Origin: Macrostomum lignano | Taxonomy: Eukaryota | Direction: 5' to 3' | Assembly: GCA_002269645.1 (NCBI GenBank) | Contig: NIVC01001839.1 | Location: forward strand, 24,208 to 88,207 | Length of the DNA: 64,000 nucleotides | Part shown: one piece after another, positions 1 to 45,500 of the stretch | How the letters are laid out: the number at the start of each line of letters is the position of its first letter | Numbering within the stretch: the stretch's first letter is position 1 | Position numbers and translations under genes: made by a program | The notes under the pieces: model-generated | Database searches by the model: none | What the model was told of the DNA's origin: nothing | What the model saw: only the letters and a program-made list of their open reading frames with translations

Positions 1-876
1 AAAAAGATCTGGACGACGATAAATTGTCAAAGGGGTTTGTTTGTTTGTTCGTTTGTTTATTTGTTTGTTTGTTTGTTTGTTTTATAATCTTTATTTTGAC
101 GCTTACTAACGAATTCCCCGCACCGATACTAAGGAATTCCTTATTAGGTGATTAGAAATTACCAATTAGGCGATTAATCAAGAAATTTCCCAACTGAAAA
201 TACTTGGAAACCTGGACAGAAATTAGAAATTTCTAATGAAGAGCAACAATTCTATTATAAGAAGCAACAATTTCTCAATAGGCAACAAGAATTCCCCAAT
301 CTAAAGCAAGAATTCCCCAATCGAAAGCAAGTATTCCCCAATCGGAAACAAGAATTTCCCAATCGGAAATGAGAATTCCCCCATCGGAAACAATAGTTCC
401 CCAGTCGGAAACAAGAATTCCCCAATCGGAAACAAGAATTCCCTCATCGGAAACAATAGTTCCCCAGTCGAAAACAATAGTTCCCCAGTCGGAAACAAGA
501 ATTTCCCAATCGGAAACAAGAATTCCCTCATCGGAAACAATAGTTCCCCAGTCGGAAACAATAGTTCCCCAGTCGGAAACAAGAATTCCCCAATCGGAAA
601 CAAGAATTCCCTCATCGGAAACAAGAATTCCCCACTCAGAAACAAGAATTCCCTAAACACATCCGCAGACGCTCGTCCGTTCCTCTCAATGATTCCGAGA
701 ACATTCACCAGCAGCAACAGACTCTGGAGCAGCAGAAGCAGCAGCAGCCACTAAAGCAGAAAGATGCGGATGAAATAGAAGACGACGAACACTCGTCCAG
801 TTCTGCTGAAGACGAGAGCGGAGCGCAAACCGCAGCTCTGGTCACCGTGCTGGTGGACACGTCTGTTCAAGATTGA
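1..876 (+). CDS. 3' end of duplicate GPCR gene: end of penultimate exon (1-34) and last exon (669-876)
   Basis: KDLDDDKLSK-GG|gtttgt donor at 35. Acceptor ccgcag|A at 669 restores the frame: GRSSVPLNDSENIHQQQQ...VLVDTSVQD-TGA. Mirrors 43993-44026 and 42599-42806. Confidence 0.75.
255..655 (+). repeat. ~21-bp minisatellite (CCCCAATCGGAAACAAGAATT) in GPCR last intron
   Basis: Direct tandem units; explains the spurious ORFs 301-717 and 369-656. The mirrored array at ~42820-43630 is longer. Confidence 0.95.
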
Positions 877-1459
877 CTTAACTACGAGCAAAACGAATTA
901 ACCAATTGTATCTTTATCGCTGAGTAGCAACCTGCAGTAGCTACTTGGGTAAATTTTGTAAATACATACGTAAGGAGTTTTAAGTCACAATTTAGACCAC
1001 TGAATGTCTGAAGTGAAACATTTTTAAAGAACTGAGAATACCGTAGCAAAAAAGACCCGACTATTTTTATGCTAATTTACCATTTACATTGTACGCTATT
1101 GAAATATATTTCACGAATATTTAGATTTGATACCTTAAATGCTTAAATAAGTTTGTTGGCACTTTACAATAGTCTCTTTTAACTCTCTGCTTACTCTAGA
1201 CTACAGCTTCGGTTGTTATTTTAGCCCGGTAGTCAACCAAATCTTGCAAACCATCCTAACCTGAAATTGTAAGAGTTTGGAAGGCTGTGCATGATGTGTA
1301 CACTCTTATTTAGATATTTCACGCGTACCAAAAGTAAAAATCGAAATATATGAATATATAATTAGATTGCTTTCCCTACTCTTACTAAATCTTATTTACT
1401 GTTATTTGATTAGAGCCGCGTACTTATTTTAGGATGGGAGAGGAAGATAGTATGGGAGA

Positions 1460-41173: not shown

Positions 41174-42598
41174 TTCTTTCTGGCCTCGCTTTCTAACACT
41201 CTTACTACAGAGAGTGAAGCCCAGCCGTGTCCTCTTCATTCTGAATAATTTATTCAAATCAGTACGCTCTTATCTTCGCCACAGTCGCCGCTCTCAATGT
41301 GCAGTGAGCCCTTAGCTTGATGACGATCGCGGACGAAAATTTGAGCTGTTGCCTGAAGGGGATTCTGATTAAAAGAAAAATTGCCCTCAGCCGATAGTGA
41401 AGTGCTATCGAGAGTGCTGACTGCAACCGCAATTTGTCACTGACGCTCACAGTTGTCTGCATCATGAGCGTCGATCCATAATGTAGAGTGCCTCTGTTTG
41501 TGTTGGACATCTGGTCGATTTTCACAAAAAGCAGTACACTCAATGGGCAAAGCTGACGTTGTGGGATTCGACCCTAATAATGGTTCCTACTCCTAGTAAA
41601 AAAACTCATGATCTCCCCATGTCGTTCAGATTATATACGTTCTTTCTATTTTTCGTCCTCTATTTTACTACATTTGGGTTTTTTCTACATTTTCAATTCC
41701 ACTCCACAGTTTCTGCCTAATGAGCCGGCTTACTGAGCTCACTGTTCGTTTCGCGACATCTCATTTTACTGTCTACCCTTCAGCCGTATCTTATTGGTTG
41801 GCTGACTGTACACTCCTTTCCCACTTATCAACATTTCTGTGCCTACTTTTCTACCCCTCAGCTTTCTCTCATTGGCTGGCTCACAGCACGTTCCTTTCCC
41901 ACTATCAACCCCTCTGCACCTCTACCCCTCAGCTTGCTCTTATTGGCTGGATCACTGTACGCTCGTTTCCCACTTATCAACACTTCTGCGTCTACCCTTC
42001 TAACTCTCAGCTTGCTCTCATTGGCTGGCTCACAGCACGCTCTCCCATACTATCTTCCTCTCCCATCCTAAAATCAGTACACGGCTGTAATCAAATAACA
42101 GTAAATAAGATTTAGTAAGAGTAGGGAAAGCAATCTAATTATATATTCATATATTTCGATTTTTACTTTTGGTACGCGTGAAATATCTAAATAAGAGTAT
42201 ACACATCATGCACAGCCTTCCAAACTCTTACAATTTCTTTCAGGTTAGGATAGGTTGCAAGATTTGGTTGACTACCGGGCTAAAATAACAACTGAAGCTG
42301 TAGTCTAGAGTAAGCAGAGAATTAAAAGAGACTATTTAAATGTGCCAACAAACTTATTTAAGTATTTAAGGTAACAAACCTAAATATTCGTTAAATATTT
42401 CAATATCGTAAATGGTAAATTAGCATAAAAATAGTCGGGTCTTTTTTGCTACGGATTCTCAGTTCTTTAAAAATGTTTCACTTCAGACATTCAGTGGTCT
42501 GAAATTGTGACTTACAACTCCTTACGTCTGTATTTACAAAATTTACCCAAGTAGCTACTGCAGGTTGCTACTCAGCGATAAAGATACAAGTGGTTAAT

Positions 42599-45500
42599 TC
42601 AATCTTGAACAGACGTGTCCACCAGCACGGTGACCAGAGCTGCGGTTTGCGCTCCGCTCTCGTCTTCAGCAGAACTGGACGAGTGTTCGTCGTCTTCTAT
42701 TTCATCCGCATCTTTCTGCTTTAGTGGCTGCTGCTGCTTCTGCTGCTCCAGAGTCTGTTGCTGCTGGTGAATATTCTCGGAATCATTGAGAGGAACGGAC
42801 GAGCGTCTGCGGATGTGTTTAGGGAATTCTTGTTTCTGAGTGGGGAATTCTTGTTTCCTATAGGGGAATTCTTGTTTCCGACTGGGGAATTCTTGTTTCC
42901 GACTGGGGAACTATTGTTTCCGATGGGGGAACTCTTGTTTCCGATGGGAGAATTCTTGTTTCCGATTGGGGAATTCTTGTTTCCGACTGGGGAACTATTG
43001 TTTCCGATGGGAGAATTCTTGTTTCCGATTGGGGAATTCTTGTTTCCGACTGGGGAACTATTGTTTCCGATGGGTGAATTCTTGTTTCCGACTGGGGAAT
43101 TCTTGTTTCCGATGGGGGAACTACTGTTTCCGATTGGGGAATTCTTGTTTCCGATGGGGGAACTACTGTTTCCGATTGGGGAACTATTGTTTCCGATGGG
43201 GGAACTACTGTTTCCGATTGGGGAATTCTCGTTTCCGACTGGGGAACTACTGTTTCCGACTGGGGAACTATTGTTTCCGATTGGGGAATTCTCGTTTCCG
43301 ATTGGGAAATTCTTGTTTCCGATGGGGGAATTCTTGTTTCCGATTGGGGACTTCCTGTTTCGATTGGGGAATTCTTGTTTCCGATTGCTGAATTCCTGTC
43401 ACCGATTGGGGAATTTTTGCTTTCGATTGGGGAATTCTTGCTTTAGATTGGGGAATTCTTGTTTCCGATTGCTGAATTCCTGTCACCGATTGGTGAATAC
43501 TTGCTTTCGATTGGGGAATTCTTGCTTTAGATTGGGGAATTCTTGCTTTAGATTGGGGAATTCTTGCTTTAGATTGGGGAATTCTTGCTTTAGATTGGGG
43601 AATTCTTGCTTTAGATTGGGGAATTCTTGTTGTCTATTGAGAAATTGTTGCTTCTTATAATAGAATTTTTGCTTTTCATTTATAAATTTCTAATTTCTGT
43701 CCAGGTTTCCAAGTACTTCCAGTTGAAAAATTTCTTGATTAATCGCCTAATTGGTAATTTCTAATCACCTAATAAGGAATTCCTTAGTATCGGTGCGGGG
43801 AATTCGTTAGTAAGCGTCAAAATAAAGATTATAAAACAAAGCAACAAACAAACAAACAAACAAACAAACAAACAAAAACTAACAAACATACATACAAATG
43901 AACAATCAGACAAACAAACAAAACAAACAAACAAACAAACAAACAAACAAACAAACAAACAAACGAATGAACAAACGAACAAACAAACAAACCCCTTTGA
44001 CAATTTATCGTCGTCCAGATCTTTTTCCTTCGAAGTCCTCCTAGTCTGCGTCCTCTGCCGCATACTGATGCTCACAGTGATGCCTCTTCCCCTGCTCCTG
44101 CCGTTGCTGCGAGCCCCCGTTCCCCTGCCGCTGGCGCACCGGCCCGGCAGCAGCTGCAAGCAGGTCAGTCGAATTTCTCTATTCATGGCCCCAAAGATGA
44201 TGGGATTGGCGCAGGAGGCCATGGCGTAGAGCACCGTAACAACAACGTAAGCGTTTGGATCGCGCTGATTGTCCGAATCGAACATTCGCAAAACTCCGTA
44301 GGGAATAAATCCCACTAGGAACATGACAAACACGACTCCAAACATTTTTGTGATTTTGATTTCGCGTTTCAATAGCAGCCGATCGGCGGCCGAGGACCGG
44401 CGGCCCGTGCGGTGGACGAACATGAAGATCAGGATGAAGCAGACGATGATGATGACGCAGGGCAGGAACTGGGTGAGCAGCACAATTCCCAGGATTCTGC
44501 GGCGCTGCGTGTGCTCGTAAATGCAGCGGAGCATTTTTGCCTGCGGTGTTGTGCGGTTGACTTAGTCCAGAACTTTGTAGAGGGGAATCCCGTGACCTAA
44601 ATGGGGAATCCCATGCCTTGGGGGGAATCTCATGCCTTGAGGGTAATCCCATGCCTTGAGGCAATTCCATGCCTTGAGGGAATCCCATGCCTTAAAGGGG
44701 AATCCCATGCCTGAAAGGGGAATCCCATGCCTGAAAGGGGAATCCCATGCCTGAAAGGGGAATCCCATGCCTTGAGGGAATTCCATGCCTAGAGGGGAAT
44801 CCCATGTCCTAAATTGGGAATCCCATGTTAGGAATCCCATGCCTTAATATGAATCCCATGACTTAAATGGGGAATCCCATTTCTTAATAGGAACCCCGTG
44901 ACCTAAATGGGGAATCCCATGTCCTAATTTGAATCCAACGACCTAAACAGGGAATCCCATTTTTAAGGAGGATCTCATGTTTCTCGATGAATCCATTTCT
45001 AAAAAGAGAATCCAATGCTTAATCGGGATTTTCATTCTAAACAGTCCAAACACGCTGTCGAACACTGAATCTGAATCCAAGCAAACTGTCTAAAATAGGG
45101 GAAAGCCTGATCCAGCCAAACTGTTCAAAATAGGGGAATCCCATACCTTAAGGTGAACCCTTGTTCTGGAGCTGCCACTGTCTCGTGGTATTTCTTAAAC
45201 TTTTCGTTTGCAATAGCTACATGTGCGTTCAATTAGGCTAACATATTTATTTTGCTCATACGTACAGTCCCTAATTATTGATCGCACCACTTTCATTCTT
45301 CACTGATCGCCCCACCCCACATTACGCTCACGTGTATTGTACGCTTTCACTCAGCTCATTAAATATATCGACCCAGAGCATCTCACTCAAGAGGCCTTTT
45401 CGTTTTTCATCGTTCGTTTATCATCGCAGCATATAGTTTGTCTTTCATCTCGAGTTATTCTAGCAACCAACCCTATTCTTTAAGGGGAATACCAATCCAG

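Follow-up and report, generated by a model that had tools for sequence, protein, structure and literature searches.

The inverted repeat in scaffold NIVC01001839.1 of the Macrostomum lignano assembly Mlig_3_7 (GCA_002269645.1) is very probably a scaffolding error, in which two of three subgenome copies of a locus have been misjoined head-to-head across an unsequenced gap. Our analysis covered a 64,000-nt stretch of this scaffold (record positions 24208-88207), which is referred to as the window and to which all positions below belong unless another source is named. An earlier note, made from the letters of this stretch alone, had proposed either a gene-bearing palindrome of the kind that can be maintained by arm-to-arm conversion or a pair of haplotypes scaffolded head-to-head. 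The comparisons described here argue against the former, because the arms resemble each other no more than they resemble a copy on another scaffold, the nearest relative of the left arm is a different contig, and neither a boundary nor the junction is sequenced. The latter is supported in a modified form, with the two arms representing two of the haplovariants S, L1, and L2 and not necessarily Mendelian alleles.

The deposited sequence does contain the inverted arms. Positions 40-19072 match the reverse complement of 21758-43876 around a short spacer, as had been described, and this spacer comprises a run of 652 N at 19073-19724, the only N run and a scaffolding gap of estimated length introduced by SSPACE, together with 19725-21757, for a total of 2685 bp. 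The left arm (1-19072; record 24208-43279) is the right-hand end of one Canu contig, here called A, and the right arm (21758-44625) is part of a second, B, that begins at 19725 and also comprises everything further right. The first segment of contig B (19725-21757, forward strand) carries an NPF-like gene and is without a left-arm partner only because contig A ends first. The duplication had been said to end at 44026, a position that is merely the mirror of the first base of the window. In the source scaffold, the 599 bases to the left of position 1 align with 44625-44027 at 98.2% identity and without gaps, and the homology thus passes the window edge and reaches at least 44625. The left arm, with at least 599 bp more to its left, is therefore collinear with 21758-44625 when the latter is read in reverse complement, and the right arm is homologous to the left from 19072 down to -598.

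Neither limit of the left arm has been sequenced, as the first base of the window on one side and the last base before the gap on the other both still lie within the homology. This agrees with the earlier observation that the left arm stops at the N gap and that the supposed turn-around, which falls within the gap, is unsequenced. No sequence in the window reads through the gap, and the listed open reading frames that span it consist of X. The arms and spacer consequently do not lie on one continuous sequenced molecule, since 652 N separate two Canu contigs, and neither the inner nor the outer limit of homology is defined on the left arm. A symmetric palindrome would need a gap of at least 2033 bp, in contrast to the estimate of 652.

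Each arm contains an intact, five-exon gene encoding a PX-domain (sorting-nexin-like) protein, and the two copies read away from each other, as originally reported. The left copy occupies 9402-14393 on the reverse strand (exons 14393-14372, 14215-13820, 13191-12733, 11779-11579, and 9458-9402), and the right copy occupies 26391-31383 on the forward strand (exons 26391-26412, 26570-26965, 27594-28052, 29006-29206, and 31327-31383). These models are based on tblastn of P0006, gene calls, and a Pfam PX domain match of 7e-17; GenBank splits the left copy into two genes (P0005 and P0002). The convergent arrangement of a duplicated GPCR sequence likewise holds, although it is the whole 3′ exon that has been duplicated and not just the 3′ end of the gene. 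The left copy of this exon enters the window at 1-155 on the forward strand (the last 50 codons and the stop), with the remainder lying just left of the window. The right copy belongs to a rhodopsin-family GPCR gene at 43761-47082 on the reverse strand, with its 3′ exon at 43761-44534 and its 5′ exon within 46378-47082. Both 3′ exons are intact, and they differ by four amino-acid changes and by 37 residues in the length of a tail encoded by (AAAC)n. Scanning the window for Rfam families and tRNAs revealed no non-coding RNA.

The resemblance between the arms is strongly uneven. Left-arm positions 8436-14228, which contain the PX gene, differ from right-arm positions 32349-26557 by only 8 mismatches in 5793 nt, whereas the inner 11.4 kb are 97.4% identical, the unique outer parts 95-98%, and the minisatellites 84-90%. 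In the divergent blocks, substitutions amount to 2-4%, and tandem repeats account for most of the difference in length: an AGAT array has 97 copies in one arm and 178 in the other, and a 21-mer array has 19 and 39. The largest length difference is that of a (CTGC)n microsatellite (an AGAC/CTGC array) with ~740 copies at 32748-35703 in the right arm and ~99 at 7643-8040 in the left. Many 1-bp indels had been noted at the inner ends, and we do find 12 one-base indels in the inner 2 kb of the arms, but the excess over the 7 substitutions there is modest, and further into the arms a real substitution divergence of 2-3% dominates. We also considered arm-to-arm conversion as the sole cause of the 5.8-kb near-identical block (8436-14228 and 26557-32349). 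This explanation was rejected, as a third contig is identical to the left arm in this block and a fourth lies within 0.1-1% of it over the unique parts.

These third and fourth contigs are NIVC01003835.1 (F) and NIVC01002694.1 (T), which together with A and B bring to four the number of times that the locus is present in the assembly. The sequence of F was read over record positions 1103-6788 only. Over the corresponding 5693 bp (left-arm 9302-14993), A and F exhibit no substitutions, and the 8 columns in which they differ are all homopolymer indels of 1-2 bp; in this stretch, 23 substitutions separate B from F. Because homopolymer indels are the sole differences, A and F represent one copy assembled twice, a conclusion that rests on direct comparison for 5.7 kb and that we infer to hold for an overlap of ~11 kb. 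The start of contig F lies ~160 bp from the left-arm (CTGC)n array. Contig breaks near repeats are common in Mlig_3_7 in any case.

The nearest relative of the left arm is thus contig F and not the right arm. Pairwise divergence among A, B, and T ranges from 0.2 to 5% per block (to 5.2% between A and B) and is mosaic: in some blocks B is nearer to T (0.68% versus 2.1%, and 1.45% versus 5.2%), and in others A is nearer to B. This mosaic pattern implies that the closest relationship is not that between the two arms. The arms resemble each other no more than either resembles T, which resides on another scaffold, and they do not show the mutual closeness and very high identity throughout that would be expected of a palindrome.

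Contig T is contiguous and free of N, and its collinearity with B extends from 19725 to 42785, the segment 19725-21757 corresponding to L004 3521-5909. T continues for 9.87 kb past the supposed turn-around to a CBS gene, and this stretch has no match in the window. The gene order in T is CBS, NPF-like, PX/sorting nexin, and GPCR, with no inverted copy, and within 9.9 kb beyond the turn-around we detected neither an inverted repeat nor an inverted transposon copy. The sequences that flank the gap in the scaffold are not neighbors in T, the one other copy that can be read through this point. For F, its length and gene content suggest that it carries on past the end of A in a T-like order. GenBank lists the exact PX protein P0005 under only three accessions, two of them on NIVC01001839.1 and one on F, from which it follows that F probably lacks a second, inverted PX copy. 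Thus, T is collinear with the locus without inversion, and the same is expected of F.

The sequenced line, DV1, is a neopolyploid with three subgenome haplovariants, S, L1, and L2, in which ~85% of the genome is present in three copies, and paralogues differ by a SNP rate of 2.2% and by large indels (PMC10733133). Blocks in four copies account for 11.9% of the assembly, a share that falls to only 1.7% when judged from read depth, scaffolds mixing S and L sequence represent 36% of assembly length, and the faults of Mlig_3_7 have been described as "incorrectly expanded allelic variants" and chimeric scaffolds (PMC10733133). The assembly was built by polishing PacBio contigs from Canu 1.4 with Pilon and joining them with SSPACE 3.0; its authors reported 180 Mb in duplicated non-repeat blocks with identity of at least 95%, and only 64% of bases were scored as error-free by REAPR (PMC5730564). 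The source genome is thus known to hold several diverged copies and the assembly to be redundant and chimeric (PMC5730564; PMC10733133), as a misjoin of haplovariants would require. The divergence of the duplicates, including the large repeat indels, matches the genome-wide haplovariant level (2.2% SNP; PMC10733133).

These observations are best explained by a series of events that makes the structure an artefact of assembly and not a palindrome in the DNA of the animal. A locus comprising the CBS, NPF-like, PX/sorting nexin, and GPCR genes, present in three copies in DV1, would have been assembled as the four pieces A, B, T, and F. A and F would be the same copy with an overlap of ~11 kb, with F apparently carrying this copy past the point at which A stops, and B and T would be the two remaining subgenome copies. 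SSPACE would then have attached the free end of A to the free end of B, in which case the join between them is false. Because both free ends point to the same missing neighbor on the CBS side, the scaffold would read as inverted arms around a gap. It should be noted that SSPACE makes a join only if several read pairs support that orientation, and that ordinary pairs cross-mapped between homologous contigs would set A parallel to B and not head-to-head; both points speak against a misjoin. One might speculate that the link came from an error in library orientation or from chimeric mate pairs.

A genuine inverted duplication of more than 45 kb on one DV1 chromosome, with its centre lost through the trimming of fold-back reads by Canu and its ends linked correctly by mate pairs, appears unlikely, and the SSPACE link is the one point that still keeps it in play. 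Palindromic reads are known to be split by long-read assemblers. Such a duplication would fit with the ends of both contigs lying no more than 2 kb from the same homologous point and bearing small indels, with the inverted orientation and small gap estimate of the SSPACE join (PMC5730564), and with the inversions documented between MLI1, the large chromosome, and the small chromosomes (PMC10733133). However, the arms are 2-5% apart in several blocks and no closer mutually than to T, a symmetric arm would not fit into the estimated 652 bp, and the structure, which has no sequenced boundary or junction, is absent from T. The equivalence of A and F points to redundant assembly and not to an extra copy, and most four-copy blocks in Mlig_3_7 have three-copy read depth (PMC10733133). 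We regard as quite unlikely a duplication of this size with arms from two haplovariants, generated by the unstable, recently fused MLI1, missing its centre from the assembly, and representing a palindrome before conversion homogenises its arms.

The mirror might instead reflect subgenome redundancy coupled with a real but smaller rearrangement, for instance the breakpoint of an inversion or a short, local inverted repeat, in one haplovariant just beyond the contig ends, where it would break both contigs and give rise to genuine inverted read pairs. This would explain the SSPACE link without a fourth copy, as well as the termination of A and B no more than 2 kb from one homologous point, and inversions that distinguish the subgenomes have been reported (PMC10733133). 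We nevertheless consider it very unlikely, given that the corresponding 10 kb of T are free of inverted repeats and rearrangements and that contigs in Mlig_3_7 commonly break near repeats regardless. Least plausible, to the point of being negligible, is an origin of both arms in one PacBio read, of the snap-back or missed-adapter kind, or in another one-molecule fold-back artefact. PacBio sequencing is known to produce palindromic chimeric reads, but these would yield identical arms, and here each arm has its best match on a different independent contig. A snap-back origin was rejected because the arms are on separate contigs and differ by hundreds of substitutions and by kilobase-scale differences in the length of tandem arrays.

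The closest parallel to the structure, read as a misjoin of subgenome copies, is provided by the false duplications of uncollapsed haplotypes or homeologues that haplotig-purging tools target. These are likewise bounded by contig ends or gaps and diverged to the haplovariant level, with collinear copies on other scaffolds and, as with A and F, one copy assembled twice. The present case differs in that the join was made in inverted orientation by a mate-pair scaffolder, which is not expected from simple cross-mapping of read pairs, and in that the copies are the subgenome haplovariants S, L1, and L2 and not plain alleles. For the same reason, the half read depth and allele segregation that the earlier note named as evidence for a haplotype misjoin could mislead, since homeologues that are fixed do not segregate, and their depth is not half that of the flanks. 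On paper, the structure resembles the human Y palindromes P1-P8 and X-linked palindromes, whose arms extend over tens of kilobases around a spacer a few kilobases long and each contain intact genes. In sex-chromosome palindromes, arm-to-arm conversion typically keeps identity between the arms above 99.9%, the arms are mutually closest, and the spacers and outer boundaries are sequenced. Here, in contrast, the arms are up to 5% apart and have closer relatives elsewhere, and both the junction and the outer boundary are unsequenced. Inverted duplications formed by breakage-fusion-bridge cycles or fold-back priming share head-to-head arms and a short spacer, but a recent fold-back duplication would leave near-identical arms, whereas those in the window show subgenome-level divergence.

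Were it real, a gene-bearing palindrome of 45 kb in a neopolyploid invertebrate would be relevant to the origin of palindromes and to rearrangement after whole-genome duplication. On present evidence, the scaffold serves as a worked example of a class of error in a widely used reference, in which a piece of one subgenome copy is attached inverted to another. Users of Mlig_3_7 should therefore assume three haplovariants of the PX, GPCR, and NPF-like genes when counting copies or designing knock-outs, and not four copies or a palindrome, and contig A should be joined to NIVC01003835.1.

Two of the genes at this locus merit further description. The NPF-like neuropeptide precursor gene, defined from P0016, has exons at 19854-20102 and 20860-20953 on the forward strand, and its coding sequence in the window contains a 2-bp deletion 46 nt from the start; among the homologues found with the window-derived sequence, the protein is annotated only on T. 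The right copy of the GPCR gene matches Pfam 7tm_1 at 1.5e-12 and 3.8e-17. A search for homologues of this receptor returned no M. lignano protein, and its nearest named relatives are melatonin-receptor-like proteins with 36-44% identity.

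Comparison of the window with itself revealed that positions 43876-21758 are the reverse complement of 40-19072, and because the similarity lies far above chance, the two inverted arms described in the earlier note hold for the deposited sequence (record position on NIVC01001839.1, 323,461 bp, is 24207 plus window position). Arm-to-arm alignment of 8436-14228 with 32349-26557 shows differences at 8 of 5793 positions; mean identity is 97.4% across the inner 11.4 kb, 95-98% in the unique outer parts, and 84-90% in the minisatellites. Array copy numbers also differ widely between the arms (AGAT, 97 vs 178; AGAC/CTGC, 99 vs 740; a 14-mer, 17.6 vs 12.6; a 21-mer, 19 vs 39). 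The 599 bp of scaffold lying to the left of the window match 44625-44027 at 98.2% without gaps, so position 44026, formerly taken as the end of the feature, merely mirrors the window edge. Homology likewise reaches the final base of contig A (the left arm, up to 19072), and no left-arm boundary was observed on this inner side or within the 599 bp on the outer side. Positions 19725-21757 of contig B (the right arm and everything right of the gap, from 19725) are without a partner for the sole reason that contig A stops.

Both arms carry an intact PX-domain (sorting-nexin-like) gene, as had been claimed; it has five exons and lies at 9402-14393 (minus strand) and 26391-31383 (plus strand), both copies being compared with 10001-14442 of L004, the coordinate stretch of a third copy of the locus on scaffold NIVC01002694.1 (T). 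Left-arm annotation splits it into two genes (142 aa and 227 aa), the right arm has only the 142-aa part annotated, and T has one gene of 359 aa; the introns contain minisatellites with 22-bp (~86 copies) and 23-bp (~36 copies) units. The 3′ exon of a rhodopsin-family GPCR was also found in both arms; the right copy of the gene occupies 43761-44534 (3′ exon) and 46378-47082 (minus strand), and the left copy ends at 155 (plus strand), with its 3′ exon extending left of the window. The duplication reported for this gene therefore stands, except that it is not confined to the 3′ end: the left copy has the full, intact exon, with four amino-acid changes and an altered low-complexity tail length. 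An (AAAC)n microsatellite encodes this C-terminal tail, whose length differs by 37 residues between copies. Among named proteins, the closest are melatonin-receptor-like ones from molluscs and annelids (36-44% identity); no M. lignano protein came back from the homologue search, and the gene thus appears to be unannotated in public protein sets.

Contigs A and B are separated by the single run of N in the window (19073-19724, 652 N). Nothing reads across it, ORFs called there being runs of X, and the turn-around junction is, as previously stated, unsequenced. Mlig_3_7, the Macrostomum lignano assembly in question (GCA_002269645.1), is built on PacBio reads assembled with Canu 1.4; Pilon was used for polishing and SSPACE 3.0 for scaffolding, the latter with paired-end and mate-pair reads from Illumina and 454 (PMC5730564). 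The gap therefore marks the place where SSPACE joined two Canu contigs. A symmetric palindrome would require a gap of at least 2033 bp, versus the 652 estimated. According to the authors of the assembly, duplicated non-repeat blocks at ≥95% identity total 180 Mb, and REAPR rates 64% of bases as error-free (PMC5730564).

Proteins of the locus are also annotated on two further scaffolds, T and NIVC01003835.1 (F). T (149 kb, contiguous and without N) is collinear with contig B over 19725-42785 and continues for 9.87 kb up to a cystathionine-beta-synthase (CBS) gene with PALP and CBS domains; this extension matches nothing in the window and contains no inverted repeat. The layout of T indicates a single-copy gene order of CBS, NPF-like neuropeptide gene, PX gene, and GPCR. 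F (47,306 bp) begins at the equivalent of window position ~8200, ~160 bp from the AGAC microsatellite. In the 5693 bp of F that were compared, no substitutions separate it from contig A; the eight differing columns are all 1-2-bp indels in short single-base runs, which are typical long-read consensus errors; against contig B, the same stretch has 23 substitutions. Contig A and F are therefore one sequence assembled twice and dovetailed, and F runs ~36 kb past the point where contig A ends. Only three accessions carry the exact PX protein (two on NIVC01001839.1 and one on F); a second, turned-back PX copy on F is therefore improbable.

The feature most likely has no biological reality and stems from a false head-to-head join of contigs A and B by SSPACE. 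Contig A would represent one haplovariant, that is, one of the diverged locus copies of the S, L1, and L2 subgenomes, with its true continuation in F, and SSPACE would have attached it to a second haplovariant, contig B. The alternative offered in the earlier note, a haplotype pair scaffolded head-to-head, is thus supported in a modified form, with subgenome haplovariants plus a redundant contig in place of haplotypes. The chief argument against this account is the orientation of the SSPACE pairs: ordinary cross-mapped pairs would set contig A parallel to contig B, and T has no inverted transposon copy within 9.9 kb that could mislead mapping.

In view of this orientation, two rivals are retained: a genuine inverted duplication with a centre lost by the assembler, which we regard as improbable, and a genuine rearrangement on a smaller scale close to the contig ends, to which we give slightly less credence still. 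Across nine unique blocks, the substitution distances for A-B, A-T, and B-T all lie within 0.07%-5.2% and form a mosaic: contig B is nearer T in blocks 23475-24974 (0.68% vs 2.1%) and 39975-40467 (1.45% vs 5.2%), and contig A is nearer B in block 30975-32474 (0.2% vs 1.0%). The arms are therefore no more alike than copies on separate scaffolds, and the closest relative of the left arm is F. Neither arm-to-arm conversion nor a recent fold-back would produce this pattern; together with the missing left-arm boundary, it leaves a palindrome maintained by such conversion unsupported. A snap-back read artefact is excluded, as the arms are too divergent from each other.

As shown by Zadesenets et al. 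2023 (PMC10733133), the DV1 genome is made up of the subgenomes S, L1, and L2, with three copies for about 85% of the genome by read depth and paralogues differing by 2.2% in SNPs plus large indels. Four-copy blocks make up 11.9% of the assembly versus only 1.7% by depth, an excess read by those authors as "erroneously represented paralogs", and S/L chimeric scaffolds account for 36% of assembly length (PMC10733133). Three distinct haplovariants (A = F, B, and T), one of them represented twice, are exactly this published pattern. If the arms are fixed homeologues (S against L) and not alleles, as may be the case, then a halved depth over each arm and segregation as Mendelian alleles, proposed earlier as signs of a misjoin, would be unsafe criteria.

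The NPF-like precursor gene has two exons in the window (19854-20102 and 20860-20953, plus strand) and in its intact copy on T (L004 3652-3902 and 4827-4920). The predicted product, labelled "hypothetical protein" in GenBank (BOX15_Mlig016961g1), ends in LALAGRPRF followed by GKR, an amidation and cleavage site; this ending is the flatworm neuropeptide F signature. Its match to the Pfam pancreatic hormone/NPY family is weak and sub-threshold (E = 0.0023; 18.4 bits, cut-off 28.7). The window copy carries a 2-bp deletion 46 nt into the CDS, ~175 bp from the start of contig B, which is probably a contig-end consensus error rather than the mark of a pseudogene. On T, a ~280-bp MITE-like element (L004 4222-4503), whose 50-nt terminal inverted repeats are 94% complementary, sits in an intron stretch that is unalignable to the window copy (compared at 20143-20272) and ~190 bp shorter there, which suggests that the haplovariants differ by an insertion.

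The sequence right of the arms holds large tandem arrays at 47306-50023, 50415-52087, 45628-46361, and 52963-53535, including an 11-bp unit (~248 copies), 20-bp units totalling ~85 copies, and a 37-bp unit (~20 copies); the array at 52963-53535, with a 22-bp unit, belongs to the same family as arm arrays 13356-13662 and 27123-27429 (94.5% identity, inverted orientation). Decayed reverse-transcriptase (LINE-like) fragments are present in both arms and the right flank. Listed jointly with a 210-aa ORF bearing homeodomain-like HTH domains, which are typical of the N-terminus of Tc1/mariner-type transposases, they occupy 3458-4752 (plus strand) and 38665-39728 (minus strand), 16300-18650 and 22300-24550, and 54032-55660 and 59435-60067 (both minus strand). 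Contig A ends ~0.4 kb past the last ORF of one such LINE-like fragment.
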